This document shows, piece after piece, positions 446 through 54,800 of a DNA stretch of 64,000 nt. The translations under genes were made by a program, and so were the position numbers. The stretch is taken from assembly GCA_965637545.1 (NCBI GenBank), contig OZ281498.1, positions 27,528,001-27,592,000 of the forward strand, read 5' to 3'. How positions within the stretch are numbered: the stretch's first letter is position 1; each line of letters starts with the position of its first letter. The notes beneath the pieces were generated by a model, which was not told the origin of the DNA, did not search any database, and worked only from the letters and a program-made list of their open reading frames with translations. The DNA comes from Phallusia mammillata (taxonomy: Eukaryota).

Positions 446-3400
446 CTCGGTTTTCCCCACATCAACATGTGCATGAATTCATCCCCAATCGTGGCAGACA
501 AGTTTTTGTTTATTAAATAGTTTGTCAGTTTTGATTCCATCTCCTGTGTAACAAACAAATGATTAAAACCAAAGCGAACTCCAAACTGAAGAGTTAAAAC
601 AAGCAACATTTTTGGAGGCTGAAAAAATCGAATTCCCCATTTTTTCAGCTTTCGGATTAAATTAGGTTGATTCTAACGTCATGGAAACAAAAAAATCTAA
701 TTTAAAAAAAAATCAAAAATCAAAATCCAGTTATGGAAATTATTTCATAAAACTGATCAGTTTGCAAAATTTGAGTAACCCACCTGAATAACAGACTCGC
801 ACGACTCCTTCATACAGTCGAGGACATTGTCCATGTATGACAGCGTGGACACTAGATGGCAGGCTTTCTGGGAAACTTCATTGCACAACAAAATGTCCTC
901 GAAAATTCGACTTAAATCAAACTAAAATAAAAGTTGGATTACAAACTGTTGGTATAAACAGCTATACAGACTGTCAACTAGAAGAGTGGCTTTCTGATAT
1001 ACTTCCATTTTATATATTCTATACGATATTTACCAATTTACTATACACATCATTTGATCTACACATATGATTGTTTTTGTAAACAAAAACAAATGGGTCC
1101 CCACACGCGCGTTTGTGCAGATTTACAGTAAACAAATGTTGCGGTGATTTTTAGATTCTTAAGGACAAATTTTTAGAAAGCATTAACCCAACAAAAAAAA
1201 TTGTTCGTATTCTTTTTGCACTCTTATTGTCATATAATTACAAAAACATTAAAAAACGTAACAAATACTTTAATCTAATCTCTTGCTTTGACCCAGATAT
1301 TGTCGTCCAAGGTCGGATTTTCAACACATTTTTTTTAGAAAGCTGTAACAGTTGTGTTACAGACACTTTAAATTAAAAAGCAATTTGCTACAAGTGTGTA
1401 CATAACAAATTGTTTTTCATTTAACTTTGTTTCGCAAAACGAGTACCATTGACCTGTAGTAACCTCTCAGTGTGCACACGCCAAACGACTGTTTGACTTT
1501 TGACACCGTTTTCAATAGCACGCCATCCTTGGTGTTCAACAATACTGTTAAGCCTAATTTATACATGAGTATTGACTCCTAAATTGATTGTCAAAAAAAC
1601 GCTACGTTATGACGAAAGAAAGGTCTGAACTATGTTTGTAATACCTACTAGTTGACCTTAAGTAACCCGTGATCATGCGGCGGCCAACCTGACAACGAGC
1701 ATTTAAAAAAACATTTATTTGGCAAAAAAGTCAAGTTAACTTTTTCATCTTTACTTCGATTAACAAAGTTTTGCTTGACATATACAAAACCGAAGCACGG
1801 TTATTAGGTTTAAATCACGTCATAGGTGTAAAACCTTCGCCAAAACTAAAAACGTGAGTGATAACTTAATAAAATGACATAGCATTGCTGTGCACAACAG
1901 CTGATTTCTAATCACTGAAACGACGTCTCGTAAAACGTCTGTCCGACGTCAAGCTGAGCCCTCCCGCTATCGTAAACCAGTGAGTTACTTTCTTGGTACT
2001 TCTGCCTACAGTGTCTTTCTTGACCAAACGAGCGTTAGACACATTTACGTTTCGGGGGCCTGTGGGTGAACCGCTGGGTCATTCGGGGTCAAACTTCTAG
2101 AGAATCAAGTTCAGATTGATAACTAAGATATGTCCAAATTTGAATAAATTTGAAGCACTTTTTCTTTACCAAACCAGCATTACAAACCAGCGTTAAAAAA
2201 TATACGTTTAGGGGGCCTGTGGGTGAACCGCTGGGTCAATCGGGGTCAAACTTCAGGTGGACCAAGTTTGGATTAATATCTAACATGTGTCCAAATTTCA
2301 ATAAATTTGAAGCACTTTTTCTTGACCAAACCAGCGTTACAAACCAGCGTTAAAAATTTTACGTTTCGGGGGCCTGTGGGTGAACCGCTGGGTAATTTGG
2401 GGTCAAACTTCAGGTGGACCAAGTTTGGATTAATATCTAACATATGTCCAAATTTCAATAAATTTCAAGCACTTTTTCTTGACCAAACGGGTCTCACAAG
2501 CCAGCGTTAGACAGAAAAAAGAAAAAAAGAAAAAAAAAATACGGACAAAAACAATATGTGTCCCCTTCAGGGAAGGGGACCCATAATAAGAACTGTTACT
2601 CAATAAAGTGTAAAAATTACCAACTAATGCTGTTACCACATATTTCCTACAACTTACTGCAATTATTTCACAAGTTTTCTGATGACTTTTATCTGATTGT
2701 ACAGTTGTAATAAGATGATAAAAGTCTGGTGTTACACATAAATCCAATATTGATGTCTCTGGTTGTTTCTACATAAAAACACTGCATAAGTAGGGGTTAT
2801 CAACTGTCTTTCAATATGTTGCTTACCAATATTGTAGCAACGTTGACTGAAAATATCGGAAATATTCCGTACGCAAAACCAAGTATGTTACTGTGATCAT
2901 CGCATGACATTAGCAAATTAAACCTGTGAAAAGAATAGTAATTGATTCAACCACTTATTTGATGAAAAATATAGCAACAACTTCGCAAACAATAACCAAG
3001 GTGGAGGACGTAATTGGTGCATTAAGACCCATGGAGTTTACTTACATCTTAAATGCATTGAGTCAAATATGAATTTTAACAATATTTTTGGATACGAAAC
3101 TGAAGATGCCAATTAGGCAAAACATACATATTCCACGATATCCATCGACTGAGTGGAAAATGTTTTCCATTCTTGTTTAATCACTAAAATGATGATCGTC
3201 TGTGACCATGCTGCCTGTTAAAAGGTCCGATACTATTCTGTTTTCTCAGTATCTTAACAATGATAGGCTTAGATGCAGTGCACCCATGCAAAGAAAGAAA
3301 GTAACATTTGACTAGTATCTCTTGTATTACCTCAAGTCTGCCATGATGAGTTTTGCATCGATGATTTTTACATCTTTGGAAGCCAATTGTGGAAGTTGAG

Positions 3401-4604
3401 CCAAGTAGTCTTTAAATGTAAGAGATGCCATTCGTCTTTCAAACTCCAAATCTGAAACAAGTATATATTGTATATTCAACAAGTGTACATAGTTTTATTT
3501 CAAACAACCAAGACTGGTACTGTTTAATATAGTTCCAAAACACAGTAAACATTTAAATTCTTACCATTCATTTCTTGGCTTTCAAACCATTGAATAGAAT
3601 GCTGCGAACTTTTCAACGAGAACTGTTCAGAGTTAATCGTCCAAAACACCTGAGCTTTTTCCATTCCAACAAATGCAATTCCATTCTCTTTTGTGTTGTA
3701 AGCAACAGCTATCACTGAACAATAATAACACTTGCTAAGCAAAAAGTAATTTAGGGTTAGCCAACACACAAACTTTGCTAACAATGTCAGTAGATAAAAA
3801 ATGGCAAACCGTTTTTTTTATTCATATATTTGGAACAGGTCACACAATTTATTCACTATTGCAGACTGCATTGCAGGTTAAAAAACTCAGTTTATTCTCT
3901 GAATCTAAACAAAGGTTTTTTATCTGATAGATATATTTTTGACTGAAAAGCCAGTTTTATCTGAGAAGCCAAATATTTAGAAAAAAACACATCCAGCCAC
4001 CAGTACAGAATTATCCAGCTATTTGATTAATCTTTTTTATTGCATAAAGATTGTGAATCCCAACCATAGTCAGTTGTTACAGAAATTGTCCAGATTGTCA
4101 CTGAAACCATTTAATTGCATAAAAAAGCATGACGAATTGATTATGCAGCTTAAATGTTCCTCTCTATACATATGTAATTTAATAAACATGTGTGTGCCCC
4201 TATAGGCTACATGCTCAGCACCCACTACTCTACAGCATCAACTAACTGAACGTTAAAAAAGTTTGGCATGCATGCAAGAGATCATACTTTATGTTTGTTC
4301 ATTATTATGTTCTTATTTGCACTTAAGTAAACACTGTGGCAGAAATTACGTTTGGTTGGAAGCAAAAAATACCACCATACACACCTCCGCCATCTGGTCT
4401 CCAGCAAATATCATTTATCAAAGCATCCTTTCCAGGAGCAGGTAGACTCCAAACTTTCTCAATCGATGACAAACGATGCAGCACTACCTCTCCTGTGCTT
4501 GTTGCCATGGCAATAAGGTCCCGTTTTGGTGACCACGACATCAACTGGACTTCACATTTCAGGTTGCGCTCACCCACCAACAGAAACGAACACTCCTCTG
4601 ACAT
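446..4604 (-). CDS. ANAPC4: Anaphase-promoting complex subunit 4, N-terminal part (continues beyond left edge)
   Basis: Phase-consistent GT-AG exons: 4604-4385, 3714-3565, 3451-3331, 2923-2827, 2768-2658, 921-784, 543-446. Peptides WSPKRDLIAMA..WRPDG, FAYGIF, DEFMHMLMWGK match APC4 as recalled. Next exon not identified. Confidence 0.92.
2016..2510. repeat. Tandem array, about 3.2 units of about 157 bp, in ANAPC4 intron 5
   Basis: TTTCTT(G/T)ACCAAAC unit starts at 2016, 2161, 2318, 2475. The near-identical ORFs at 2150 and 2307 are by-products of the repeat. Confidence 0.95.
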
Positions 4605-5782
4605 TTTTACTTAACATACACAGCGCTGCCCTAAATAAAATTAATAAACAAAAGTAAAGGATGTTTTGTTAGTTTTTCCAAATCCACAATACAAATACAC
4701 GTCAATATTCATTTATACCAGGTTGAAATAATTCTAAGATGCATTTCAAACAACATAGATTGCCTGGAGTTTATAAATCAACACAATTTTACGGACTTAT
4801 AGCTGCATGCCTCTTGTGACAGTCTGCAGAGTAAGGAAGCTGCACAGGCGAGGTTTTTGTCAAAAAAAACTTTTTACACACCCTGTTTATATCACTTGCA
4901 TTTAACCGGGATAATCAGCCTTGAGGTTATATACAATACAGGCGCATGACATAGTGGTCCTGCTGTCAGTGAAATACATTTAGCACCAGATAATAGGCAC
5001 AGCAGCAGCACAGTCCATCCTACAAATATGCAACAACTTGCAGAACTTTTAAGATGTAAATTACTTCGGGGCCTTCCCACATCTTTATTTCACTCGGACA
5101 ATATACTGTATTAATATTTGTAAAAGTCAACAACTGTAAAAACTGTCAAAACGCGAAATCATTTCCAATCAGTTTAATTTGTATCATCCACAATCCACAT
5201 GATAATACTCATTCCATTGCGTGATTAAGGCACCGTCTACTTGCCCACTTTGTTTTTGTTTACTTTTGCAAGTCGCAAAAATAATAAACTACTGGATCAT
5301 AAATCACGTGGTCAAATTGTCTTATTTTCTTCCACCAATTGGGACTTTCCTTTTTCGCGGGCTATTTTCACATAAAGATCATTTAACAATGATTTGCAAA
5401 ATTACGTAAAAATCAAATACAGACTATTTGCAGGTAATAAGAAAGTTTTTTTAGTTTATTATTCATGAGAAAATTGTTCTTTAGGCACGATATTGAAACA
5501 ATACACCGATGTTTTTTGAACCAGATGTCAGCTTGTTTATACACATCCTGAAATATGATTTAATATAGACTACTAGCCAGTACTTACTGAAAATGACAAT
5601 GTTGTTACTTTGAACTGCGCTGCAGATACAGAGAAGTTATTCACTCTGATAAACACGACATGAACATGAAGAAACAACGTCCACACAATAAAATTCATTT
5701 TCTAACAAAGGTAGTTAATGTTGATGGGTCGTTTCAATTCCATATAATAACAGCAGTTTGTGAGTTGAGTCCTTCTGTTGTT

Positions 5783-8700
5783 TCAAGCATAATATCCCAT
5801 TAGAAACGTCACAGCCATTGCCAGTGTAATAGCCAGGGCATTAAGGAGGAAATTTTCGGAAAATAATTCCTTCTTTCTTCCGGGTTTTTCTGATGCTCTG
5901 CTGCTTCGGTTGCTCTGAGATTCTACACAATGTATTTCGTAATTTACTGCCCAATTGCAAGTATTTAACATAGATTTAATTTAATAACTAAACGTTTATG
6001 GGTTATAGTATTAGGGTGTTATTTTTTCAGGGAATGTATTGGAGATCAAGTTGCCAAATTTTGAACTAAAAATATTGATGCAAACGAGCTCGGGGTGATA
6101 GAAAATTTTAAACTCACCAAAATCTTCATCCAAATCTCTGTTTTCTTTTTCCGGTTTCAGATTTTTTGTTTCTTTTTCATCGCCTGTCCCCGAACCGTCG
6201 TTTCCGATTTCTGTTTCTGCTTTTTCTTGTGCCTGTTTTGTCTCATTCTCATTTTTATCCCCGCTTTCATCATCTTTCACAAGTTTCTCTGCAATGTAGC
6301 AAAAACGTAATAACTTAGTTGAGATCGTTATCTCCTTTGCAAGAGGTTGCTTAACGAGCTTTGTGTAGACAAATGTGGACGACGAATTGGGTCACGTGTT
6401 GTTGCTATTAATGTGTTACCAGCTATTCTTGAGATGTACACAAGGTTCTAAATTCAATTAAGTGTCCACATACGTTCACTGCCTTAAGACATCGACTATT
6501 CAGACGTTATACTATCAATAAAATGCTGGAAATCAACCACGGACCAGCTTCGGGCGTTCATGCATTACTCGTTTTTCACAATCTAATTTAGCGCCAACCT
6601 TTAGTTGTTTCTCCCACTTCCTCAACCTCGTAAATTTCCAACCGCTTGGTGGGGCTCGTCGGTCTGGGGCTTTCCAATTCTGTGACGTCATCTTTTGTAA
6701 ACCAGGTGGTTCCCCTTAACTGCAACAGTTTGTTTAAAAAACTTTTCTTCAGTAGATTCCAGTGAATGAAAGCAATTACCTGCTTTTCCGGCAGAGGTTT
6801 TGTGGCGTAACTGACAGAGATTGTGACGACACAAGAGACAGTGAATACAATCGGAGCCACGTGCAAATAATTTACCCTGAAAACAGTTTACCGTGAAGGT
6901 TATTTCACCACACAGTGTGAAAATAGCTTCTCACTTGTGAACGATCCAAGGTCTTGACTCCACCTCGTCACAAGCTGGTCCGGAAAAATAAAAATCCAGG
7001 ATTAATCGGATGACTCCGCCCGTAAATCCACTTATAAGACCCCAGAACGCTCCCTGCAACACGAACGTAAACTTCCAATGTTTACTGATAACCATTTCAC
7101 ACATTATCACCTTTTCATTAATACGGGGCCACAGAATTCCGAACAAGTAAAGAGCAAAGATGGGAGGACCTAGCGCTGATTGGATTGATTGCAAATAGAG
7201 GAAGAGCTGTCCTCCGGCGGATGATAGGATCACCGGGATCCAGAGGATGCTGATCACCACCAGGACACAAACAGTCAATCTGCGCGCAGGGAACAAATGG
7301 ATGTTGCATAAGTAAAGATAACGTCATGTACTGTTACGTCATCATAAAACTCCAACATAAAAGCCTGCCTACAAACGTTTTAAAACAGGGCTGGGCAACC
7401 TTTACTGTAGGGCCAATTATAAATGTCAAAATTGGCTCGCGGGCCGCACATGTGCATAACACAAAGTGATTTTGCTTTGTTTCTTACCAAATATGCTTAA
7501 CTGCAAGCAAAATTCGTATTTGATTCTAGCCACATTTTGCCACATCGCAGAAAACTAGCACCAGGCGCATTAATCAGTTTAAAAATATGTAATAATTGGA
7601 CTCGTTTGCCAGTACTTTTGAAATCCAAACGTCTCTGCGGGCCGCACAAGCTTTAATGAAGGGCCGCATGAGGCCTGCGGGCCGCAGGTTGCCCACCCCT
7701 GCTTTAAAACGTCCACAACAAAAGTCCTTTAATTTGAATTTCCCGCGCAAATTTATCCTCCTTACTTCCCAACGATCAACATCTCTCTCTCGGACGCCTC
7801 CTTGCGGATTCTCTTCCACACGTCGATGGTGAAAATTGTGCTGGTGCTGTTGAATATCGATGTGAGGGAACTCATCAGAGCAGACAACATCGCCGCAACC
7901 ATCACTCCGCGCAAACCTGCGGTGAAACGTCACTGTGCGTCATCATAAGTGCGATGACGTCATATAGACGTGTGTTACCTGTGGGTAGGATTTCTATGAC
8001 GAGTTTGGGGTAGGCGATGTTAGAACAACCCTGTGCGTTGCCACAGACGCGCTCACATTCGCCTGATGTTGCGCAGGCCACCTCATCCGGAAAAAATACT
8101 CGGCTAATCATGCCTGAAAAATATGGAGCAGTTCTTTAATCCAAAAATTAGTCAACAAAATCTGGTCTTGAAGGGTGTATTACACTTGTGGGTGAGGTCA
8201 GCCTGTGTAGATCACAGTTTAACTCAATGACTGTTGGCATATGTATGATTACTTCTGGAGGAACAGACCTCAGCTGTGCTAAGCATTATTGTTACTTGTC
8301 ATATTTAAGCGAGAAAGTCGTAACATAACGAGAAACATTACAGGAAAATATGGAGTAGTTCTTCAGTCTGAAAATATGACAACAAACTTGAAGAGATGGG
8401 GTGTATTAAACCCTTGTGGATGAAGTCAGTCTCTGTAATTCACAGTAAAAATCACAACGTGACTGTTGACTTTTTTTGTCTACTTAACGAAGGACAGATC
8501 CTAGCTGTGCTAAGCAAGGTTGTTACTGTTCATATTTTCAGCGAGAAAGCCGTACCAAAACGAGAAAAAATACAGATGATTTCGTAAAGTGGTGGAAGCC
8601 CGTGAAGAAAGCAAAATCAAATCTGTATATTTGTCACAAAAACACCAAAGAAAAAAATGAAAAAAATGCTAAACAACAACTGGTCATATTTGATTTACAA

Positions 8701-11700
8701 TTCCTACCCGTCATAACAATCATGTACATTGGGATAATCTTGAGCGCTCCAGCAACGATACAACCTGCTTTGGCGTGTTGAGGAGACTTTGCAGCAATCG
8801 CACGCTGCACAATCACCTGTTCAACGTAACAATGTGTTCATTCATACGTAACAACCACCATTGAATCCCACTCCCACCTGATCCGTGCACCAATACCACG
8901 ACCCAAGGAAGTAGATTCCGAGGATCATTCCGGGCCACGGGAGGTCTGAGGTTACTGGGTCACGGAAGATGTGGAACGAATCCGCCCTCGGAATTCCGCA
9001 AGAGGTGCTATTTCCCGATCGTATGATATCTATGGAGGTTTGCGGTATGGCTTGCATGTATTTAATCTTCAGGTTTTCGTAACCTCCGATTCTTATAAAA
9101 CCTGTAAGAGGATGGAATACAGTGGTGGGATTCAGCAGGTTCGCACCGGTTTCAAAGAACCGTGTCACGAAATTTTATGAGACCAGCGAACCGGTTAGCA
9201 TTACTGGTTACTGTCAATGGACTTTTTGTAACAAAACCGGCGGAAAAATATTACGCTTGTGACAAAACCGCCTGACAAAAAATTTGAAACCCACCATTGA
9301 ATGTAAGTCAATTCAAAAAATGCAAATGGTTTTCTACAAAAGAAATTTGTGTTTAGTGGGAACCTTTGAGAGGTCCCTACTTTAAGCGACGATCAGAAGA
9401 ACTGCACGAGATCAGTCATGCAGATTTTTGTTGTATAAGTGAAAATTAACACGTTTTCGGAAAATATTTTGGTCCCTTGTTGTTTACGTGAAGAACCAGC
9501 AAAAAGGCAGCATTAGTGCCGTTAACAATCGTCTTTTATGCAAATTTGAATTATGGCGGTTTGGCTTTAATATTATTGCCCAGAGCTTTCAAACCCCGAG
9601 TCTTAAACCAGCATATTTAATACCGTTTTATTATTTAGCGTTCTCATTGAGATGTTTTAAACCAACAATGCTGGGAGTTTAGATTGTTATAAAGTTGTAG
9701 TTCAACTTCTTACTCATGATCATAAGCAACATTCCTCCTAGCAGCATGACAACAGTCTGCATCGTATCTGTGTAAATCACCGCCTTCAATCCTCCAAGTA
9801 TTGTGTAAATTGCCGTCACAACAAGGAGAGATACTGGAAGTAAAATAATTTTGATCAGCGAACTATAATAGTTGAACTATTCACAAACAGAATAACCACT
9901 TATTGTTTGAGTAAGGCTGGTGTATCCACCTTTTCTAGCTTTCTAGTAGCCTATCAGGATGTTTTTATTGATGAAAATTGGTGTGTTTTTCTTGCAAACG
10001 TTTGCACATTGTTTTCAGTGGGGTTGATATCACTTAAGCAGACTTTTAGTATTTCTAGATATGTATTTTCTTTGTATTTAACGTTTCACCATTGCGCAGC
10101 TATTTCCGGCTTGGTGATTGTTTTAGTTTATATTTGTAACGATATGTTGTCTATCACCGAGCGAGATAAAGTTAATTAAACTTCTGGTTCGGAAAGCGAC
10201 TATAAACGTTTTAAACAGACTCTATCATACCTTCACCTACCAACAATTCAACCAAAAAGTGAGATGAAAGAGTAAAAGTGAAATTACCGATAGCTAGATA
10301 CATGTTGATATTGAAGGCTTCTTGAATGAAGAGAGCCCCAGCATAAAGATCAACAGCGATCTTAGTAAGAACGTATAAAGCGAGGGAAATCACCGAAAGT
10401 GTTACTCTCAATCTGGACCCGCCGAATCTTCGGTGCAAGTATTCCGGCATAGTGTAAACCTGGAACATTCGGTCGTTTTGGTAAACAACATGCACTACGA
10501 GTTTGTACGCATTCGAGCTGCACTGTATGGTCGTTATTTTGTCTATTAATACTTGAAGTTGTTGATAAAAATCGAAACTGGCGATGCCCTACTATACAAA
10601 GCTGACATAAGCAGCATACAACGCACGCAACAGTGCCTGCATGGTTCGACTTTTATGAGGTTACTACTACGTACCGAGTATACATTTGTAGCTCGGTTGA
10701 GCCTGACAAGATGTCGTGGGTTCGAACCCCACCGCTCATTTGTTGCCCTCGCAAGTTGTAAAATGTTCTTACAAGTCCACCCACGATTTTCTACCCTAAA
10801 ATTCATCTTGAAATGAAACGATGCGCAATAAGCAGCTATTTCCGGCAAGGGGAATATTTTAGCGCAATTGTGTTACTACGATTTGTTTATCCAAGCGAAA
10901 AAAACTCAAACAAAACTGGGGTTGTACTTAAAAAAACATATAACTGCAACATGGCAACCTTGCATGCGGTGTAGATTGGCAGAAACATCCAACCCAACTG
11001 AATTATCTGATAGGGCGCGATCCATTCAAACGAGCCAATAGCAATTCCTCCCGCCGCCCCAGCTCCCGCCAACCCGATAAAATGTCCGCTCCCGATGTTT
11101 GAAGCAAATAGAGAAGCTCCTACCGGCAGCCACCACATGTGCTTGCCCGCTAGAAAGTAGCTCTTAACTGTGTTGCCAGATTTGCTGCACGATGCCTGTT
11201 AAAAAATCACGGGTTTAAACACTCTGCTTTTTAATCATAAACATAACTGCCAAAGTACTGGTGTATATAGAATACTATGATTAAATTACTTTTCAAGTCC
11301 GTGTATAGTACTCTGCTTTTTCTTTATTATTAATATCTGCTGGCACGAACCACTAATATTTAGAAAAACGTTGGCACGCGAGGTCATTAACACATGGAAA
11401 TAACAAGTAAATTGGCACGCGTCACCTAAAAAGTTGCCGATCCCTGATATAGTGTTTATGGGAAACATATATGCAGGTACCAGCTTTAATTTTAATGCTC
11501 GATAATCTTAATGCTAAAACATTTATATGCGTATAAACGAAATGACAAGTGAACCAATCAACACCTTCAGAAAATCAACACATGTTGTCACCTTTTGTTG
11601 TTTGTCGTTGAAACTTGCACGTGTATATAAGTTATGTGTGTCTTTCGAACGATATGCGAAGCCTTCACATGACTTACCTCGATTCGATTATGTGCAAAAA

Positions 11701-22412: not shown

Positions 22413-24250
22413 TTAGTCGGCGTTGTTTGGAGTAGGACTGCGGGATCCACTTTTGCGATCACCGTTGCGGTCTTCAGGAGTTCTTGATCTAAACAATACA
22501 ACACATATTGTTGAAATGTGTAGGTTAGCTAACACTTCAATATTTTAAACTCTTATATATTTTTGCAACATTACTGAAAGTACTGAAACATATCCCCAGA
22601 AAATGTATGTTTCAAGAAACAGTTATAAGTCAGGTTGCAACAATCTATTTACCTTGATCTGGAGCTTTTTCTGTCTCCATTAATGCTGCTGTGGTGCGAC
22701 CTTGAGCGAGATCGTGACCTTGAGTGGGAGCGGGAACGAGATCGACTACGAGATCTAAACAATTCAAAGTTTGTTGCTTGAGAAAATACTAAAAACAACA
22801 TTGACGGAAGCCTTCACTCAAACCATTTTTCCCTTGAGGTAAGTTGTGCTGATAAGCCACAAACACATGTGTAGTACATTTAAACACAGTTTACATCACT
22901 ACACATCAAGTTTTCTAGTTCCAACCTTGATCGGGATCGTGGACTTCGGGAGCGAGATCTTGATCTGGAACGAGAACGACTTCGGCTGACAGATCGGGCT
23001 GATTTATCTTCCACCAGACGAATTCGACGTCCGTTGATCTCGGTGTTGTCCAGCTTTTCAATTGCTCTCTTCATGTCATCGTGTGTAGCAAAGTCAACTA
23101 TGCCTTCATTGCGACGATGCTTGTGTGCGTCTGCATATGTCACTTCACCAGCTTCTCTTAAGTAATCCTTCAAACATTCACAAAAGTTAAGGCTGCTAAT
23201 TATTTTACCAGTAACATTTTATGAATTTGGAACAAAATGTCAAGGTGTTCCTTGTGCTTGTGTGAGGAGTGAAGAACTCAATGAAAATCTGAAAAATAGG
23301 GTAAAACACAAAAAGTTTTAATCACAGTACCTTCAAATCTTGCCAGCTAACTCGAGTGGATAAATTCTCCACAACCACCCGAAACTTGGTTCTTGTTGGA
23401 GGTCCGTACTTCTGGATGGCTCGGCTGTCATAATAGTTAACACGTCGGTCGTCTCGTCTGCCGTAGCCCCGGTCTCCTCCACCGCCGCCGCCGCCCCTGT
23501 GGTCACTTCTGTGGTCTCTCGAATCTCTGTAGTCTCGTCCACCGCCGCCTCCTCCACCACTGTTCCTCGGGACCCCCCTGGTAGTTTAGGGACAGAAAAG
23601 ATCCTGACTTCAGCCAGAGAAACAATGACACATACGACCAGAAGATCGCTGATGGTTACACATCTCAGCTACAGGCGTTAAAACATCACATCGCATCAGA
23701 CAGAGCTACAGGGTAGAAGCGACTAGACACACGATAGGACATCATGAGGACTATGGCCACAGAGCACAGAGCGCGTAAAGTAGCCATCACCTGCCATAAC
23801 ATTCAGTCATGGTTACAAACTGGGACGTAAAATTCAGTTTTTTTTACTTTATTTTTTTGACAAATTTATCCACAGGGTCAAACCAGTTAAGCAGTTGATG
23901 AGATGGTTGGGTTTGACGTAATTTCCATGTAGGGCAACTGCTATTTGAATCAGAATGTTATGATTTTAAAAAGGCTCTCAACTAGGTTTAATAAACAACA
24001 ATCTTAATAAAATCTCACCGCTTATTGCTTACCGTGCGTGCTCCACTGTGACTCTTTCCCCGCACAAATCTCGGTTGTTCAGTTCGTAAACTGCATCATC
24101 TGCGTCTCGTGCATCGTCGAACTCAACAAAACCGTAGCCATTCTTCAGGTTGATGTCGCGGATTTTTCCGAAGCCCTTGAAAAATCTTTCCACGTCCCCT
24201 TCCCGAGCTCTGTAGCTCAAACGACCAATAAAGACGCGGCAACCAGACAT
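22413..24250 (-). CDS. SRSF4/5/6: Serine/arginine-rich splicing factor, SRSF4/5/6 (SRp55/B52) family, about 294 aa
   Basis: Exons 24250-24033, 23577-23331, 23167-22926, 22754-22653, 22488-22413. RRM1 ([16 protein letters not shown]), pseudo-RRM signature SWQDLKD, C-terminal RS domain. Confidence 0.96.
23636..23790 (-). other. Candidate poison (PTC) cassette exon in SR gene intron 1
   Basis: GGCAG acceptor at 23791, in-frame TGA immediately after the junction, GTATGT donor at 23635 leaving a 58-nt downstream intron. Confidence 0.65.
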
Positions 24251-36658: not shown

Positions 36659-36789
36659 GTCTATGGGGTACTTGTCCTACATATTACTGGACTGATGGAC
36701 TGTTTCGCTATCAAAGGCGATTAGTAATAAACCTTTAGGCTACACTGTAATAATAGACACTTTAGGGCTGATCCCAGTTATATATTTAT

Positions 36790-36960
36790 GTTTATCTGTG
36801 TAGCTCAGTTGGTAGAGCGCGTGTCCCGGAAAGACTCCTGTCGTGGGTTCGAATCCCACCGCTGGCTGGATTTTTCTTGCCTGTGCCTTGCCGTATTGGA
36901 ATGCTTGGTAACCGGCTGATTCGGTATAACGCCTTGAATGAGCCTGACGTACTATGTTTT
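36790..36960 (+). mobile_element. tRNA-derived SINE with intact A and B boxes
   Basis: TAGCTCAGTTGGTAGAGC at 36801, GTGGGTTCGAATCCCAC T arm, no pairing acceptor stem; body shared with three other copies in the window. Confidence 0.85.
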
Positions 36961-37414
36961 GTAGTAACAATGTGCGAAAACAGGAAACGCTGTACATGGA
37001 TATATGTAATAAAAATCAGTGTAAAAACGTTGCGATTATCATGCATACAAACAAGCATAGAATGGTTTAAAACACAAATGTTACTCAGTTTCAATGCACA
37101 TTTTGTACAGCTCAAAAAATCCAGGTGTGTATAAACATTTGATTGTTTGCAAAATATAGTACACAATAATATAGTGCTTCGAAACGAAAAAAAAACGTTT
37201 AGGCTGCGTTTAAATATTGTTATCGCGTTGAAGATGACGTGTCCATTTGCCGAAACATTCGACAATAAAGCATGTGCCATTTACGTTCATTTGGGTTATA
37301 ATATTTCTAGCAAGTCATTGTTTTTGTGTAAAAGTGTGGAACAAGGCATAGAACGGGTTTATCCCTACAGGGAAAAAGATGGGCAAAACCGAAAGTTTAT
37401 TGTTTATTTCAGCA

Positions 37415-40400
37415 TCAGATATCGGTGTCTGCAATATAAGGAGAGGGTCGGCTTCCTTCAGGCAAGCTATCATCCAAATCCACACTAACCGCCCTCGGTA
37501 AGTCGAACATCTGAGGACCCAGACTCGGTTGCCAACCACGCCGGGTTGCTATGTCAACGTTTCTCCGTGGCAACGTCGATCCCTCACTCGGAGTCTTCCA
37601 ACGAATAGGGGAAGTCCCCTGATCTTTAGCATCAACTGCTACGTCACCGGGCTCCGATGATGACGTGGTGACGGTGGTCTCATCCGATGTTGACGACGCG
37701 GCACGTTGCTCGACAGGTGGCGCTGTTTCATCATCCGAACTCTCAAAACTGTCGCTGGATTCGTACGAGCTGACGTCACTGTTGCTCTGCGCGCTCCTCC
37801 TAGATTGCTCCTCACTCCTCCTACTTCTTCTCCTCTCGCTTCGACGACGTCTGGAACTCGGCGTTCTGCTTCGGTGACGACGACTAGCCGGGCTGCGACT
37901 GCGATGACGTCGACGACGGTCACGTGATGAGGATCTTGAGCGCCTCCGTGCGGCAGCAGCTGCGGCTGCGTCGATACTTCGTTCCTGGAAATAATCAACA
38001 TCACATTAATGCGACAACAGATGTTGAAAAATGAAGAATAGTTTAAAATGAAATCAACCCTACAGTCGCAGTTTTCCGGTAATTACCGTCATCTACATCA
38101 AAATAATCCAAAACCCAGTGTGTAAAACCCAAGGCCAGTGGTTCTCGACCGGGGTCCGCAAAGCGTTTTCAGGGGGGTCGCGACAACTTCTTATGTCGCC
38201 CAAAAACGAATTGATAAATCGCTATTAAAGTAAAGGCTTCAGAGATGGTAAACGCGCTGCAATAGCTAAAACTTCAAAGGGGTCGCAATTAGATTACAGC
38301 ATCGAAAAGGGTCCGCAAAGGCAAAAAGGTTGAGAACCACTGCCTTAGGCCAAACAGAATCAACCGGTGTACACAATATTTACATAATATATATATTTCA
38401 CCAAATGTTTATGGCATCTTAAGTTCTAATGGTTCAACGAACATAATGTAGCATCAATTTATTAAATTTCTCATATCACGTTGTTTAATGTTGTTTTAAT
38501 TGATCAATTTTCTCATAAAAACCTATTAAATGTTCCAATAACGTCCACTCATATAAACGGGTTTTTTTACCTGATAAGCTGGCTCCCTCGGTGTGTAAGG
38601 GTTGGCTCGTTTCACCTCGTCATGGACGTAAGCTTTGTTGTTGAAACTCGCCAAGTCCTTCGGGTCGTGAGTGAACAACGCTCTGAAATCGTGTGGGTTA
38701 GAAAAAATCAAAGAAAAATAAACTGTTGCTACCAAACATATCGTAGTAACATTTGCCAGAAGAACGTTGTTAAGTTTTTATATCAAAGAAACATTGGGTT
38801 GCTTATTATTGTGGTGCACGGTCAGTGGTGGGATTCAAGTTTTTTGTCAGCCGGTTCTATCAGAAAAGTCATATTTTTCAGCTGGTTCTGTTACAAAAAG
38901 TCCATTGACAGTAACCAGTAATGCTAACCGGTTCGCTGATCTCGTAAAATTTCGTGAGACGGTTCTATGGAACTGCGTATGGCCCATTATCGTCTCCATC
39001 TTGGAAAAAGAAATATAATAGACACCCAAAAACTTACTCTTTTTCCTTCTTGCGCCGCTTAGCGGAATAACAGCAGCAAGCTATGATGATAGCGCCCACT
39101 AGGAGCAGAAACGCGCCCACGGCAGCGAGTATAATCATCCACAACGCCACCACCGTCTCACATTGAGACCCCAGGAACCAAACGTCACTTTGTGAAATAC
39201 ATCTGTAACACAACAAACTACGTCAAAAATGTGTTCACAAGGTCATGGGTTCTAATCCCATCTCGGTCGCTTGTGTTTCCTGAGCTAAAAACTTGAGCGG
39301 TTGCCACACAATAAAGTATGTCATTGATTGCTGACGTCACACACTCGTTTGTTCACGTCACACGTCACCCTATTGTGACGTATTCGGCCTGATGTGTTTT
39401 TTAATTGAAAGGTTCGGGACAAAACATATCAACTGTTGCTACAATAATATACAGACTAAATCAAGCTCTTATAGCAAATGTATTGTTGTAACGTTCCCAA
39501 TAAGACGTCGAAACGTCCTTTCAAGCAATTCATTTGCGAGAAGAACATTATTTAGTTTAAGTCGCCACAAAATGTTTTTCTGAGTAAGAAACTTGAGCGT
39601 CATTGCTCCAACCCAGTGGTTCCTGATGGGTTGAACTACATTGAAGTCACCAACTGCATAAGTCGAAACAAAGTTAAACAGACTCGCAATAAACCAGGCA
39701 GCTAGATGGCGGACTCATTGTGAGCAAAACGCATTCAGGCGTTGCGCGCCCACCGAGGATAAAAATCAATCAAACAAAATTAGGTTTAAATTAGCTCGTG
39801 TTTTGATGTTGTAAAGCATAAGGAACGGTGCTTACGTGCATGTCGGGGTCTCTGCGATCGAAGCTTGTGCACAAGTTCCGTTGTTTTTGCAGAAATCCTT
39901 AAGACAGGGTGACACGCAGTTAACTTGTACTCCTGCCGGTGCTTCGTTGCAAGCTGTGTTGGCTGGACACGTCACTGTTCCGGGAGTGTCGCATAAACCT
40001 TGACCTGGGAGTAAAGAACCGACATTGAATAGAAAAGTTACACAGAAGTCATTGCTTTAAAACGCACGTTCGATAACGCACGGTACGGATTTGAAATGCT
40101 TCTTGGATATACTACTGTGGGGAACTTCTTAGTTTTCTTGTGAAAACAATATGAAAATAGTAATTCGTATGTTAAATAGTATAGTTAAATGGTTTTAGAG
40201 ATTTTCGCCTGATATACGCATACAACTTTTTCAAGCGTTTCTGCACGTTTTTGTTCTGTCATTAACATTAATTGAAAAAACCCAAAAAACACTTGTTTTT
40301 AAAATTATTTTTTTCCATAGTCAGTTCTGAAGGCACTCGTATAAAAGGTGGGCACATTTTTGCGAGCTACAGAAACCTTGGGAAAACATACATAACCTTT

Positions 40401-41648
40401 TGTTCAAACCACAGACTCACCCGTAAACTGAAAAGCTGCTTCGTCCTCCGCCACAACAGCAAAGAATGTGCCAAACGGACCAGAGAGCAAGTCATTCACT
40501 ATCAAGTTATAATTTCCTATCCCATTTGCGATATCAGCATCTGAGGTGGTTTGATTCAGAACACTGTACCTGGCTTCTACATCATATGTCACCTGCAACA
40601 AAACACCAACTTAGCTACCATATTTATCACGTTTCAGTCCTTTCTGGTCCTAATTTTGCCTTCAGTACACCTATTTGCGCAAATGAAAATGCAAAGTAGT
40701 TAAGTCAGGCCGGGTTCGGGCTTGAAAAGTTTTAGGAGACGGGCTTGATTCGGGCCTGGCTTTATATTCTGTGTCAGTAATTGTTGTGGCTAGTTTGCTG
40801 GACTTAACGTAATGTCCAACAGCCCTAAAGCGTCTTGTTAGGCCATTGTCTACCATTCTCCATTGTATCTGTCTTCTTTATTATAGTGCCTATTTCCCAA
40901 AACAACCAGTTTTATTCAACTCCAATGTTAGACAAGTAAGTGTTGTACTTACATCAGTTTTTTCTGCATCGACAACAGTCGTTCTGACGTTGTTTGCTGT
41001 TTGGAATCCAACTAGGTTGGCTTCGTAGAAAGGCCCGATCTGCGCAAATGAATATTCTATAATTTGTTTTAACCGGGATCAGTTTATAATTGGAGTTAGC
41101 TAGAATCAAGCGTTTTTATACAATATAAAACAGTGTCATCTGCGAAAAACTGTATTGCAACATGAAGCAGAAAACTTACAGATGTGATGAAATTGTTCGA
41201 TGTGAAAGTTGAATCTTCAAAATTTCGAGTTAATCTCACAGTTGTTGTGTAAATCTTGACGGTATTTGCAGCTGTAACAGAAAGTCACAAGGTTACGGGT
41301 TCGATTCCCCCTGGAAAACATAAACACGATAAAACTCACCAATTACTGCGGGGCTGTCGCTTACATTCACAAGGGGAAATCCCGGAATCTGTCCAACTTA
41401 AAATAAAAAGCATTGTTTTATACTTATGACATCATAATACCGCTGCACGCAACACAAGAGATATCGAATTAAGCTTAATTTCCTCGTTAAATTTGTTTGA
41501 AAATATATGTTTCGACAAAACAGGGGTATGGTAAAGATTGTTTATTTAATCACTAAAAGATACCTGTTAGAAACGGTTGCGTCACAATCACGGCTATTGT
41601 GAGGTAATGAAAGACTTCCGAACCGGAATTCCGTCGACAAACGGGCAT
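37415..41648 (-). CDS. Paralog C: type I membrane protein, signal peptide / SEA-like / EGF-like / TM / RS-rich tail, about 502 aa
   Basis: Exons 41648-41564 (signal exon less certain), 41396-41340, 41271-41180, 41039-40953, 40592-40421, 40004-39836, 39202-39038, 38682-38571, 37984-37415; all phases compatible. Cys pattern CKNNGTC..C.C..WFLGSQCE; TM LWMIILAAVGAFLLLVGAIIIACCC followed by KRRKK. Confidence 0.85.
38136..38342. mobile_element. hAT-type MITE (CAGTGGTTCTC TIR, GGGGTCGC core)
   Basis: TIRs CAGTGGTTCTCGACC / GGTTGAGAACCACTG; flanks CCCAAGGC / CCTTAGGC. Confidence 0.85.
38823..38973. mobile_element. Truncated CAGTGGTGGGATTC-family MITE
   Basis: One TIR plus core; the other end is missing. 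Confidence 0.85.
39230..39640 (+). mobile_element. Fragments of a second tRNA-derived SINE family (Ciona Cics-like core)
   Basis: GGTCATGGGTTCTAATCCC..GCTTGTGTTTCCTGAGC at 39240-39300 and TTGCTCCAACCCAGTGGTTCCTGATGGGTTG at about 39604 resemble the ascidian SINE core as recalled; reverse-strand relative at 44200-44265. Confidence 0.6.
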
Positions 41649-44321: not shown

Positions 44322-47300
44322 TCATAACTTCACTCTACTCACCATGGCAACTGGGGGTTTCGGTCGTTTGTCCACCACAGCATAAGTGGGAGATTCTGAT
44401 CTAGGTGGAACTCCCAATCCCACTCCTGCCATTCCTCCTGCTCCTCCCACTCCTCCTACTCCTCCCACTGCTCCTGCATCAGGGAAGTTGGCCAACCTCC
44501 TCTCCATCAGATGAGTGTATCTTGCATCTGTATCGTCTTCCCGGGAAGAGAAGGAAGAACTTCTGCTGTGGATTCAAAACATAAAGTTGTGTGGAATCCA
44601 ATCATATGTTTAGCTCAGTGGTTCTCAACCATATGCTTTCCCACAGTTAAAAAGAAAAGGCCTATCCGTTGATTTACCGATTAAAACAGGATTTAGGTGG
44701 TTTGCGGCGATAGAAAAACGCGATCAGTGTAAGGTAGAGAATCACTGGTTTTATGTAAATGAAAATCAAATTTTAATTCAAAACAAAATAGGAATAAATA
44801 GTTTAGCCCATGTTTATGATTCAAATCCTTACTGGCAAATAGTAAAAAAATCTTGTATGTTCTAAAATAACATTATTTTCGAACACTACATACAGATCTG
44901 TTCATAAGTTTAATGGTGAAATAACGGTCGAAAATATACCTAAAAAGCGACATGCTTTGATTTTTCTAACATTTCGGCAAATGCTAATGTCATCATCAGT
45001 GATATTATTTTCAATTCTCAAATAAAGCAACTTTGAAACTGCTTTGGTTTCAACAACTCAATGTTTTAAACTTCCAACCTTCTGTTTTCCGCTGTATCTG
45101 CATTCTGAGGAACACCGACTGCGGCGTAATTGAATTCACTGGATGTTGATGAGGAGGTTGGATCATGCGTGGAGTCAAGGGATGTTGCTGCAGGAGTCCC
45201 AAAAGTCCTCGGAGCCGCGACAGGAGGAGTTACAACCTCCGGAAGAGGATCAACAACTTCTTTTTCTTCTTTATTCTCTATCTTCTTTAATTCTTGTGGC
45301 TCCGATTTTTCTTTCTGAAACAAAACATTAACAAATATTGTGAGATGATTGACATTTGGAAGACTGCTTGATCTAGTTATGCCATCCATAGATTAACTTT
45401 TCATTTTCTCTGTGTAGTTATAGTAGCTATAGATCGAGCTACTTTTTCTCGACAAAGTCGGGTCAGTGGTTTGCAGGAGTTTTTTAAAATGTCAAAAATT
45501 TGAAGTTTTTCCTTAAGTTTTGAGAATATAACATTGAAGTTTAGTGCGTTTGTAAAGACCAAGGGACGCACAACCAGGTTTTTGTTGTGTCCATGTGTTA
45601 ATGACTCGCGTGCCAACGTTTTTCCAAATAATAGTGGTCCGTGCCAGCAAATATTAATAATAAAGAGAAAGCAGAGTGTTTTGTGCATGTAAGGCTGAAT
45701 TTTAAGACAATGGCGTGATAAAAACTATAAACAAGCAGTGTAACGGGTTAAATCGTTACTTCAATATGAACACGAAAATTGGTTTCCGTGCCATGTAAAC
45801 CACCTCGACTGGCACGCGTGCCAGGGGTTGCCTGCCCCTGATGTAAAGTACATGTGATGTGGTTGTTAATAGCAGTAAGGCTGTAACCTCTGGTAAAAGT
45901 TTAAAAAGTAATTACCCAATTTGCAATTGTTATAGTTCATAACAAAATCTAGCGACTCCGCCGTTCAAATGTTACGATATGTTCTAGAATTCCAACAAAA
46001 TTCACTCACGGCTGATTTCAGACCCAAAGCCGATTTGATTGTGACGAAAACTTTCTGATTCTTCGACATCGGCTCGTCTCGCTCCTTCGACGCTTTGATG
46101 AAAGCTTTTCTCTTTTCCTTCTCGATCCTGAATTGTGACGTCATTATTGCGTGGCGATTAAATAGTGACGTCATAATTGCACAGAGAAAAATGACATCGT
46201 CACTTTTGGCGTTAAATAGTGAGGTCATAATTGCACAGACGAAAGTGACGTCATTATTGCACAGTAAATTATTTGTGACGTCATATTGATAACAATCGTT
46301 TTGTTTCTAAAGTGATTGTGGGACCAACCGCTTTTGCAAAATGGCTTTTTTTAATTCTGACTGAACACTTGAGAATATGACGTCATTGACAGTTTTATGA
46401 GGTAACCATCAGAAAGTCTGACCAACCTCTTGTCGATTCCCCGGACACAGATGCAGGTGATGAAGATCACAAGCAGGATTAATAGGAAGATCACAACGAA
46501 GTAGACGATCGGCATCCACAAATTCAACATTGTCTTACAGTTTGAACCGACAAACCAGTTGTTAGCAGATGTCACACAACTAAATACATCAACTGTTGTA
46601 TTAAGTGTGTGCTGGCTTTTCTCAATAGGCAAAGGACGTAAATTTCGGAAAACCAACAAGTTACCCTGGCAACAAAACGCAGGTTTTTAAGCGAGCTTTG
46701 AGCAGTCAAACATCACGAAAAACCTTGAGTTTATTGAAAGCATGACTATGCTTTAAACGTCATTGAAACACTGAAAATACTTTGAAATACAACAAGCGTG
46801 CTTAAGAGTATATACGTTTCACCCGAGCTTCAAGCAAACTTTTTGCAATCAACCATAACGATTAGTCAAATAAGGCCTCGAGGTTATTAAAAGCTTTTCT
46901 ACAGCCCACTTCAAGCGTTGGGAAAAAACAAATAAACCTATTTTTACCCAAACAATTTAGTTGACCACACGAAGTGTGTTCCGGAATCCGCTTTAAAAGA
47001 GAGTTCACCCAACCTTCTAAATGAACCTTACCTGCAATGCGGTGATACGTTTCCGTTATTCTGTATACATCGGCCATCGTTGAAGCAGATTGTCGAACTG
47101 AAGCACTGTGACGTACAGTTGACGTCATTGCCTATGACGTCATCGACACAAATTGCGTAAGTGTTGCACGCCGCTTCAGAACACGGGCTGTTGCCTAAAG
47201 ATTATAAAAACAAAACTTTTGTCATATTATTGGATTAACATTTTCGGCTGTTTGTTATTGCTTATGTAGTAATGTAGTACTTGACGTCCAAGATGTTTGC

Positions 47301-51812: not shown

Positions 51813-54800
51813 TCAGCAAACGCCACCTACCGGTTCTTGGCTTCTGGCCTGTTTATTCGGAATCGAGTATTTCGGCATTCCACTGCTCGACTCTGCAGGC
51901 GTAACCGGAGCCCGCCAATCAAATCCTCCAGGCAGGTCAGTTGATGCGTATTGTTGAGAATCACTACCCTCTGTTACGTCACTATCGGTGCTTGTGCTGC
52001 TGCTTATGTCCTCATAATGAGTTGGGATCTTGGCAGGAGTTACTCCTCGTGATGATGGTGAGGATGTTCTCGTGGAGTTTCGGGAGGTTATCACGGATTC
52101 GGAAGGAGGACTCGTTCTCGGAGGAGCCGGATGTTGATCAGTGCGGGCTTGAGGAAGAGTTTTATCTCTCGTGTAACTCCCGTTTGATTTCTTTTCATGA
52201 TCCGCTTTGAACCGTTCGAGGGCGCTCGCGTTCGCTTGCTGGGGATTTAATATTTCTATGTTGTGAACTTACATCGGTTGACAGACAGCTTTATTTAAGT
52301 TTACTGGAGTGATTTTGTATGAAACAGTTTTTGCTAAAGTTAGAGATTAAATTTATCGTTTTCCAACATTTACTAAATGCCCAAATATTGGCAAAATGGT
52401 TAATTGATTTTGCTTTAACGTTCACGGACAATATTGTTGGTTTTATTCAACCTTCAGTGGGTCGTCCTGTCGTGGGTAATTCCCGTTTGTGATACTAATT
52501 TTCGGCTGCTGGGCAATTTTTTTCTGATTTGGATATTCGTACTTCTTTGGTTTCGGTTTAAATCTTCTAAAAACAAAACCTGGCTTGGTCAAAGTGTTGA
52601 TTAAAACATACCGGAAACAAATTTTCTTACCTGATTCTGACGTCACGATACAAACAAACACCGACAATGATGATTATGACGAGACAAATAATGACACAAA
52701 CCAGCACGACGATGGGAATCCATATGTGAATGTAAGTTTCGCAATGTCGTCCAATGTACCATGAGATAGTGCCAGTGGGGCAACTACAAATGTCAAATAT
52801 ATGTTGTGGTGTTGAACACTAGGTGTTAAATTACCATATTGATGTCAAAAACGTCTTGTAAATCTTGATGTTTTGAATTGTTTTAAAATGGTAAGATTTT
52901 AACAAAAGATATAAACACGTAAATGCCTTTGTTTTTCAAAATGATTCGGCATTTACATAACATTGGCCATCGTCAGTAAGTAACACTTTTCACTGTCAGC
53001 GATTAATTGTTCCAAGTTCCAACTACGAAAATATCAGTAAGTTTTACAAAAACAGGCAGCCGCATATCAGTAAACATTTCAATAGGCCAGCTGTAAATAT
53101 TAACTTAATTTACACCATGTGTTTATTGGTTAATAGTTAGGCCAGCTGTAACTTAAAGGCCAGCTGTAACTTAATGGGAAATAATAATGCGCACGTTCAC
53201 ACTCTTGTAATGTTACCAGCTTTGAAACTTTATTTGTGAAATCCACCGACCTGCAAACCGGCTGCACCGAACCGTCGCTATGGTGACACCAGCCATTGTT
53301 ACGACAGAAGTTGACTTTGCATGACGACATACACATGACGTCAATCCCCTCAGTTTGTTCTTCGCAAAAAGTGAACCTTCCTTGGTGACATTCGGCTTTG
53401 TCACAAATGCTGTCGCCTTTAAACACAACAACATGTTACTAAAATCACACAAACTGGGTTCGAATCCCACCGAGGGTGGGATTGTTTGCTAACCTGTGAA
53501 TCTGAAAGTTGAAAGATCGACGGTGAAGGAATTGGTGGAGTCGTTTCCCTCAATGCCAAGTTTGACGGCTTGTATTCTGCCTATCAGCTGACGTATGGCC
53601 CTATCACTGTTGTTGACGTCATTCCGAAGTGTGACGTAATTATACGTGACGTCATACGTCAACTTGAAACGAAGGTAACCGGGTTTAAGTTGAGTTATAA
53701 CTGGATGTGTAAAGTTTCTAATCTCGTTACCAAAACTTGTGTTGAGTTTTGATCGTTGGGAACGAGATTGTCGACCCTGATAAAACCTTCTGATGTTGAG
53801 CTGTAAAAAGCTTCCGCCTGAAGATAGGAAAAAGGCAAGTGTAACAATTTGTTCAGTTATAATTGGAGGCAAATACGAAGAATGAAACATATGCCATTTC
53901 AACGACATTGTTATCATTTTCGCTCACAAATAAAGGTGTAAACTCTTAACTTAGTGGAAATGTTTCGTTTTGTTGCATTGTTGGCTCAGGGACGAATTAA
54001 GCTTGTATGGGGCTTCTAGCTAAAACTTGAGAAACGCCCCTATCTATTGATAACTTGTAAAATCGTTGTTAATACCAGGGAGTCGAACCACTTGTCATAT
54101 GGGTTCAGGTTCGGTTCGGGTTCACTTGGTTTTGTTTTTAAGGGTTCGGGTTCGGTTCAGGTTTTTAAAAATGTATATTTTCGGGTTATGGTTTTGTTCC
54201 GGTTTGGTCAAATTATCCGGTCCGAACCGGTTTGCGGTTTTTAAACCGGTTTAAATTTTTATTCATTTTAATTTAATTCTACCCATCATCTACCTGACCT
54301 TAACAAACTCCAAAAGAATTTTGCCCGTGCACTGTTATTTTTGACACGCCCTATAAGTGTTATATCGCAAATTCTTCAGTGCGCTGTTTTGAACAAAATC
54401 ACAAAATATTAAACAAACTGCATTTTTTACTGGTTCGGTTCCGGTTCGGGTCCAACGCCCAACAAAATATGCGGTTCAACTCCGGTTCGGGTTTTCACAA
54501 AATCGTAATTAGCGGTTCGGGTTCGGTTCGGGTTTAATGAAATTAACCGTTCAAACCGGTTCGCGGGTTCGGGTTCAGTTCCGGTTCGACTCCCTGGTTA
54601 ATACGGCAAAAACATTAAGGAATAGGAAGCCCTTGACTGAATCCAGCCAGCACGCGCTTTCAAATCGCCATTATATTTATTTGTGCTTATAGAAGAAGTT
54701 TTCCATACCGCTTGTATGAAGATCTGGTTGGTGAAAGTCGCAGTCGTTCGTAAAAACACGGTAGTTGTGTAAACCTTCGTGGTTGTGTTTGCTAAAATAA

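Follow-up and report, generated by a model that had tools for sequence, protein, structure and literature searches.

What does a long arginine/serine (RS) tract do in the cytoplasmic tail of a membrane protein that enters the secretory pathway? The question is raised by a gene, here termed paralog C, in a stretch of 64,000 nucleotides from Phallusia mammillata (GenBank assembly GCA_965637545.1, contig OZ281498.1, positions 27,528,001 to 27,592,000 of the forward strand; “the window”, whose own numbering is used throughout). RS domains are a signature of splicing factors and strongly depleted in membrane proteins, with the lamin B receptor (LBR) of the inner nuclear membrane as the one well-studied exception. 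An earlier note, made from the letters of the window alone, had described an RS-rich tail encoded by the last exon of paralog C and proposed a phospho-regulated polyampholyte that could bind RNA, form condensates or reach the nucleus after proteolysis. In the analysis reported here the observation is confirmed and the interpretation is partly supported. By analogy with LBR, and with a probability of roughly 45%, we suggest that the RS tract may be a module for charge and self-association under the control of phosphorylation.

Paralog C is encoded on the minus strand by nine exons:

37415 to 41648, minus strand: gene paralog C, orthologue of Ciona LOC100182499; nine-exon coding sequence, 502 aa
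41648-41564, 41396-41340, 41271-41180, 41039-40953 and 40592-40421, minus strand: exons 1 to 5 of the coordinate model
40004-39836, 39202-39038, 38682-38571 and 37984-37415, minus strand: exons 6 to 9 of the coordinate model
37415 to 37984, minus strand: final coding exon (phase 0) of 189 codons and a TGA stop; holds the RS tract, an acidic tract, two motifs and a C-terminal T-D-I

All eight introns are of the GT..AG type, and an in-frame stop stands 10 codons 5' of the ATG at 41648. The last exon lies directly 3' of an AG acceptor (37986-37985) and is entered after 939 nt of upstream coding sequence. It encodes, in this order, ERSID, a run of seven Ala, the Arg/Ser tract of 52 residues, an acidic Ser-rich tract, some 75 further residues and D-T-D-I, and it is closed by the TGA at 37417-37415 with no earlier stop in frame. 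The claim that these 570 nt are open holds, and the translation matches the peptide given at the time exactly, including the acidic Ser-rich tract. The mechanical open reading frame (ORF) list contains only the final 52 aa of the frame, because no ATG, GTG or TTG occurs before 37573, which accounts for the remark that the frame is missing from the list. Chance origin of an open, RS-encoding exon is excluded: only 33 of 20000 random shuffles of the exon left any frame fully open, and 39 R+S within 50 residues, as observed in the tail, never arose when its residues were shuffled 20000 times.

A search of sequencing runs returned about 20 small runs with approximately one third of the sampled words, which equals the exonic fraction of the window, and two runs with nearly all sampled words, which are probably genomic. 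In four out of four runs, from as many studies, all nine exons are joined in transcript contigs, and the contig pieces differ from the exons by 0-1 mismatches each. A single contig of about 1.9 kb covers all exons in three of the runs, and the full-length contigs extend approximately 210 nt beyond 37300. The label “RNA” of the four runs is a guess, and the evidence for expression stands at the transcript level; the intron-less GT..AG joints show that the runs hold cDNA. At 37592 (plus strand) run X8 carries an A>C change, a synonymous polymorphism since it affects the third base of a Thr codon, and the contig of run X12 is split at the same position. Contigs of the four runs contain no alternative isoform. 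The junction 38571>37984 and the reading frame, on which the proposal of an RS tail depended, are thus confirmed, and none of these contigs uses another acceptor or frame or stops before the last exon.

As predicted from its sequence, the product is a type I membrane protein of 502 aa with a disordered cytoplasmic tail of 236 aa. A signal peptide is followed by a SEA-like fold, a Cys-rich EGF-like module, one transmembrane (TM) helix and the tail:

39836 to 41271, minus strand: ectodomain exons, encoding a SEA-like domain and then a Cys-rich EGF-like module (AlphaFold2 model, structure matches)
39070 to 39150, minus strand: TM helix, residues 239-265, with the stop-transfer cluster KRRKKEKE next to it

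The Kyte-Doolittle profile (19 residues) peaks at 3.0 over the TM helix, and no other peak exceeds 1.6. On its N-terminal side the protein bears N-glycosylation sequons and 11 cysteines (10-12 across homologues), and a signal-peptide-like hydrophobic N-terminal segment can be read from the aligned sequences of all homologues. The tail is placed in the cytoplasm because a strong TM helix followed by KRRKKEKE is combined with a signal peptide, sequons and cysteines on the N-terminal side. These features support the earlier assignment of the RS tract to the cytoplasmic tail of a membrane protein.

The tract itself comprises the following elements:

37793 to 37948, minus strand: Arg/Ser-rich core of 52 aa (residues 326-377), free of Lys, in which 26 R and 15 S give 17 RS/SR dipeptides
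37784-37960, minus strand: residues 322-380, the span with at least 70% S+R in 20-aa windows; peak 85%
37949 to 37969, minus strand: poly-Ala run of 7 residues immediately preceding the RS tract, without conservation in homologues

Residues 322-380 satisfy the compositional definition of an RS domain, i.e., S and R each make up at least 20%, and together at least 70%, of a 20-residue window (PMC9479744). Summed over 20-residue blocks, the net charge amounts to about +19 over residues 314-373. The tract is written with six types of Arg codon and five types of Ser codon and contains no tandem repeat, the poly-Ala run being the sole DNA-level tandem repeat of the exon. The mixed codons and the lack of a repeat argue that RS composition is maintained at the protein level, and they rule out microsatellite expansion as the origin of the tract. 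The AlphaFold2 model of the tail, built on a nine-sequence alignment, predicts disorder (predicted local distance difference test, pLDDT, 50; predicted template modelling score, pTM, 0.12), with a pLDDT of 42-45 and no secondary structure over the RS and acidic tracts. Sites of the form RSR[ST]P occur as RSRSP and RSRTP in Phallusia and as RSRSRSRSP in Clavelina.

Paralog C resembles SR and SR-related proteins (SRSF; Cascarina and Ross 2022) in its S+R composition, its RS/SR dipeptides, interspersed His and disorder, and heavy phosphorylation would be expected to be common to both. In contrast to the SR proteins it is anchored in the membrane, enters the secretory pathway and arranges R and S in runs. 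Pfam finds no RRM in the database entry of the Phallusia protein (P0002) or in four homologues, a secreted ectodomain lies N-terminally and the 17 dipeptides of the 52-residue core do not form consecutive repeats; hence, this is not a classical SR protein. Of the earlier description as an SR-protein-like RS domain, the composition therefore stands, and strict alternation and an RRM do not. Its companion statement, that RS tracts are rare in membrane proteins, is borne out by the human survey: 0 of 52 known SR proteins are annotated as “intrinsic component of membrane” in GO, compared with 5341 of 20600 human proteins, and LBR is the known case. The membrane-protein examples in model organisms are short (20-43 residues). 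Paralog C carries a long, Arg-only RS tract in a secretory-pathway, cell-surface-type protein, where its composition has persisted across deep divergences among ascidians.

The latter statement rests on homologues that were found without RS residues in the query. A profile (A2) of the last 73-82 residues only was searched in a library of 1.8 billion representatives and gave 13 matches, 11 of which are true homologues; the other two (P0012 and P0013) are spurious. Five homologues are full-length: the Phallusia entry (P0002; CAB3262735.1, UniRef A0A6F9DIK4, 502 aa, “uncharacterized protein LOC100182499”), Ciona intestinalis LOC100182499 (P0010, 487 aa), the protein of Clavelina lepadiformis (P0004, 508 aa) and two from transcript assemblies (P0003 and P0007). 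The remaining six are tail-exon ORFs, several of them on large ENA contigs. One of these ORFs (P0001, 178 aa) was also the single result of a word search with the tail exon, which covered proteins of 104-331 aa. Its 10.7-kb ENA metagenome contig, L001, bears a TM exon 63% identical to that of paralog C, a small exon matching exon 8 and a tail exon that opens with ERSID, followed by an RS tract, then an acidic Ser tract and C-terminal motifs that are nearly identical to those of paralog C. The gene is thus already in the databases as an uncharacterised protein; what is new is the RS feature and its conservation.

A tract that passes the compositional definition lies at the same tail position in all five full-length homologues (Phallusia, Ciona, Clavelina, P0003 and P0007) and in three of the six tail-exon ORF fragments (P0001 on L001, P0005 and P0008). 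Seven of the eight passing tracts contain no Lys and the remaining one contains a single Lys. With Phallusia belonging to the phlebobranchs and Clavelina to the aplousobranchs, two ascidian orders are represented. Ectodomain word searches retrieved Ciona relatives only, which makes the family tunicate-only so far. Conservation in orthologues, which had been named as a check on the proposal, was accordingly found.

The same comparison bears on the reading that the RS tract is compositional drift without a specific role, low-complexity sequence that is tolerated as a spacer where it separates functional motifs. The tract sequences cannot be aligned between species, the passing spans range from 21 to 59 residues (P0003 has two, of 37 and 27), the tract is weakened or lost in some copies and the tails of the paralogs are unrelated, all of which a mere spacer would explain. 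What it leaves unexplained is that R+S composition, Lys exclusion and position persist across two ascidian orders and further relatives although the sequence has turned over fully and the codons are mixed. The alleles point the same way: the window allele is 97% identical to P0002, and of 16 differences 15 fall in the ectodomain and one (S347N) in the 236-aa tail. Nine of the 15 lie within residues 145-166 of the ectodomain (residues 78-233, 39836-41271). Judged from these two sequences, polymorphism is high in the ectodomain, and the tail is under constraint within the species. We therefore consider drift improbable.

The preferred reading, a phosphorylation-controlled charge and self-association module, takes LBR as its precedent. 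Like paralog C, LBR is an integral membrane protein with a cytosolic/nucleoplasmic RS tract and an RSRSP-type peptide (PMC5617974; PMC4841541). Its RS domain self-associates, phosphorylation by SRPK1, Akt or CDK1 dissociates the oligomers, and RSRSPGR serves as an SRPK1 docking peptide, while SRPKs are mainly cytoplasmic (PMC5617974). By analogy, the unphosphorylated tract of paralog C would form a block of about +20 charges that pairs, either in cis or from one tail to another, with the acidic block adjoining it, and the protein would cluster as LBR oligomerises via its RS domain. Kinases that favour Arg-Ser contexts (SRPK, CLK, Akt/PKA-type) could neutralise or invert the charge of the tract, and the two RSR[ST]P sites resemble the SRPK1 docking peptide of LBR; being mainly cytoplasmic, SRPKs would have access to the tail. 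Phosphorylation would then dissolve the clusters and change the access of PDZ scaffolds and PTB/sorting adaptors to the flanking motifs. In a study of mixed-charge cohesion, Lys reportedly cannot replace Arg, and the Arg-only use in the tract fits Arg-specific readers.

The analogy does not extend to homology. LBR is an inner-nuclear-membrane sterol reductase with eight membrane segments, a Tudor domain and an N-terminal RS tract of 20-43 residues, whereas paralog C is single-pass and type I, with a SEA-like/EGF-like ectodomain and a tract C-terminal to the TM helix. At about 52-59 residues the tract also exceeds that of LBR in length; it is richer in Arg, and an acidic block and a PDZ-like ligand flank it. 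With no Pfam match to Tudor or ERG4/ERG24, a single TM peak and no sequence homology, paralog C does not belong to the LBR family.

Several points weigh against a phospho-regulated module. R and S are grouped in runs within the tract, RS/SR dipeptides account for 54% of its residues, and SRPK processivity may be poor on a tract without strict RS alternation. Many Arg-dependent readers other than kinases fit the same composition. Among the homologues, P0009 peaks at 70% S+R and does not pass the definition, P0011 peaks at 40%, and P0006, a fragment of 99 aa without a passing tract, may end short of the tract position. Two tandem paralogs lie upstream, in which the ectodomain plan and the Cys-rich and TM exons are common to all three genes, and the tails are unrelated. 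Since some homologue fragments and both tandem paralogs lack the tract, it appears dispensable in some contexts. Finally, the literature search returned no paper mentioning LOC100182499.

Paralog C offers a test of whether cytoplasmic SRPK has membrane substrates. It is also a natural and easily manipulated case for the role of RS tracts outside the nucleus, be it clustering, trafficking control or nuclear signalling, and embryos of Phallusia and Ciona accept injected or electroporated constructs.

The tract is embedded in a series of further tail elements, which bear on the remaining readings:

38616 to 38639, minus strand: juxtamembrane NKAYVHDE, residues 291-298; N-x-x-[YF]-x-x-[ND]-E, a putative NxxY/F-type sorting or PTB-like motif
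37646 to 37792, minus strand: acidic Ser/Thr-rich tract, residues 378-426, with many S/T-x-x-D/E (CK2-type) sites
37598 to 37627, minus strand: motif KDQGTSPIRW ([KR]DQGTSPIRW), residues 433-442; G, S, P, I and W invariant in 9 sequences
37499 to 37558, minus strand: motif VDIATRRGWQPSLGPQMFDL, residues 456-475; I, R, G, W, P, S, L, G, P, M and F invariant in 9 sequences
37418 to 37429, minus strand: C-terminal D-T-D-I, class I PDZ-ligand-like, with T at -2 and I/V at 0

The juxtamembrane motif is present in five of five full-length homologues, 25 residues past the TM helix, and its N291 and E298 are invariant. An acidic core of the SS[YF]ESSDS type is kept in most homologues, and the consensus within the motif at residues 456-475 reads DIAxR[KR]GWxPSLGPQMF. 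The C-terminus of each of the 11 true homologues reads T-[DT]-[IV], which matches the class I PDZ ligand x-[ST]-x-[VIL]-COOH at the motif level.

A conserved PDZ-ligand-like end next to an Arg-rich tract is reminiscent of Arg-based retention in the endoplasmic reticulum (ER), for which the C1 cassette of the NMDA-receptor subunit NR1, K-ATP channels and GABA-B1 are precedents. In these systems, too, R-x-R stands beside phosphorylatable Ser and is combined with a C-terminal PDZ ligand. The tract could accordingly be a trafficking checkpoint, a dense R-x-R array for ER/Golgi retention or retrieval that is read by COPI and released by Ser phosphorylation or engagement of the PDZ ligand. Every full-length homologue has 11-16 overlapping R-x-R motifs per tail, which match the Arg-based retrieval signal at the motif level, the R-only, Lys-free composition agrees with the known R requirement of retention signals, and COPI could reach the tract, which lies over 50 residues away from the membrane. 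RXR retention signals are a subject of published work, for example on the delta opioid receptor (PMC6589700). However, such signals are 3-5 residues long and one short motif suffices, so that a tract of 40-60 residues with 30% Ser and an acidic block is left unexplained; in paralog C the R/S block spans 50 residues and is conserved as a block. No assembly partner is known that would mask the signal. On balance we hold a trafficking checkpoint to be unlikely.

Polybasic segments known to bind lipids readily contain Lys and aromatic residues. This matters for the idea that the tract is a MARCKS-like electrostatic switch on membrane lipids, or tethers RNA to the membrane, and is released by Ser phosphorylation. 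A net charge of about +19 would serve either role, and a high R content of RS domains goes together with RNA binding in the human survey (PMC9479744). Yet Lys is absent from the tract and aromatics nearly so, Pfam detects no RRM or other RNA-binding domain, and the adjoining acidic block would compete with lipid or RNA for the charged segment. A tether of this kind is thus quite improbable.

The ectodomain bears on a further alternative, signalling from the cell surface to the nucleus. Its AlphaFold2 model (pLDDT 68) shows a ferredoxin-like beta-alpha-beta-beta-alpha-alpha-beta domain with the Cys-rich module next to it. In VIA, SEA domains account for five of the six best matches of the model (Z 8.1-9.2), among them the SEA domains of Gpr126 (9.2) and MUC16 (8.9 and 8.5) as well as TMPRSS6 (8.3). 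Foldseek with the same model gave no significant match and only generic ferredoxin-like folds (E>0.01), and a sequence search of the PDB with the ectodomain profile gave no match. Pfam, run exon by exon and on the whole protein entry P0002, found nothing above threshold, only generic matches to the TM region and sub-threshold EGF; there was no SEA match in paralog C or in the homologues scanned, and EGF scored 14.3-14.8 bits (cut-off 21.5) in P0003 and P0007 only. The conserved cysteines in the alignment include C169, C177, C183, C194, C198, C203, C209, C220, C222 and C235, and UniRef names the proteins of Clavelina and Ciona savignyi “EGF-like domain-containing”.

SEA-type and EGF-bearing type I proteins are often shed. 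Shedding followed by intramembrane cleavage could release the tail of paralog C, whose phosphorylated RS tract would serve as a transportin-SR-type import signal, allow entry into speckles and affect splicing or transcription. RS domains can indeed act as nuclear transport signals and, when phosphorylated, recruit proteins to speckles (PMC9479744), and nuclear entry of ZO-2 is driven by SRPK1 phosphorylation of its SR repeats (PMC3744950; PMC10164977). On the other hand, the autocleavage motif GS[VI]V is absent from all homologues examined; conservation of both the PDZ ligand and the NxxY/F motif suggests that the protein acts at the membrane, and the single transcript form seen encodes no soluble tail. 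Such signalling is therefore highly improbable. Even less probable is the specific route in which regulated proteolysis frees the tail and SRPK phosphorylation, transportin-SR import and delivery to nuclear speckles would follow, a tunicate-born link from the surface to splicing.

In architecture, paralog C resembles another group of surface proteins. The transmembrane mucins MUC3, MUC12, MUC13 and MUC17 as well as IMPG2 combine SEA, EGF, TM and a cytoplasmic tail, and paralog C has, in the same order, a SEA-like fold, a Cys-rich EGF-like module, one TM helix and a phosphorylatable tail. It differs from them in having no mucin repeat domain, no Pfam SEA or EGF match above threshold and no G-S-V-V-V site. 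To our knowledge, the tails of these mucins and of IMPG2 are not RS-rich.

The two tandem paralogs and a further gene of the window were compared with the tail exon:

45065-46581, minus strand: paralog B, with a Lys/Glu-rich tail in the frame set by the sole acceptor
51813-52094, minus strand: paralog A, with a Ser/Thr-rich tail
about 22655-23029, minus strand: SRSF4/5/6-like gene, 15 kb off, with a classical alternating RS domain

An R/S-like alternative frame in the paralog B exon (46140-46036), which reads through the intron, was rejected, as the sole AG acceptor (46129-46128) would give the Lys/Glu-rich frame. Exon capture from the SRSF4/5/6-like gene was likewise considered as a source of the RS tract. 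The likeness is compositional only, with no DNA match longer than 13 nt, and in the absence of DNA homology exon capture is not supported.

One homologue deserves separate mention. In P0011 (L003:10001-10483) the RS tract is replaced by Asn/Arg-rich sequence, the Trp of the IRW motif is lost and no ectodomain or TM exon was found in the 10 kb upstream. This copy may have diverged or be in decay.

The non-coding parts of the paralog C locus appear to contain repeats. Over 38770-39063, in intron 7, contig depth rises to 1800-11700, compared with 10-60 on exons, loose ends are many and contigs continue into unrelated sequence, which suggests that the intron harbours a dispersed repeat that is abundant and transcribed. 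Short tRNA-like or SINE-like fragments lie on the minus strand in the 3' flank (36740-37000) and in intron 6 (39218-39340), and their ORF translations contain strings of the GFEPTT- and GIRTHDL-type, which are typical of tRNA-derived repeats.

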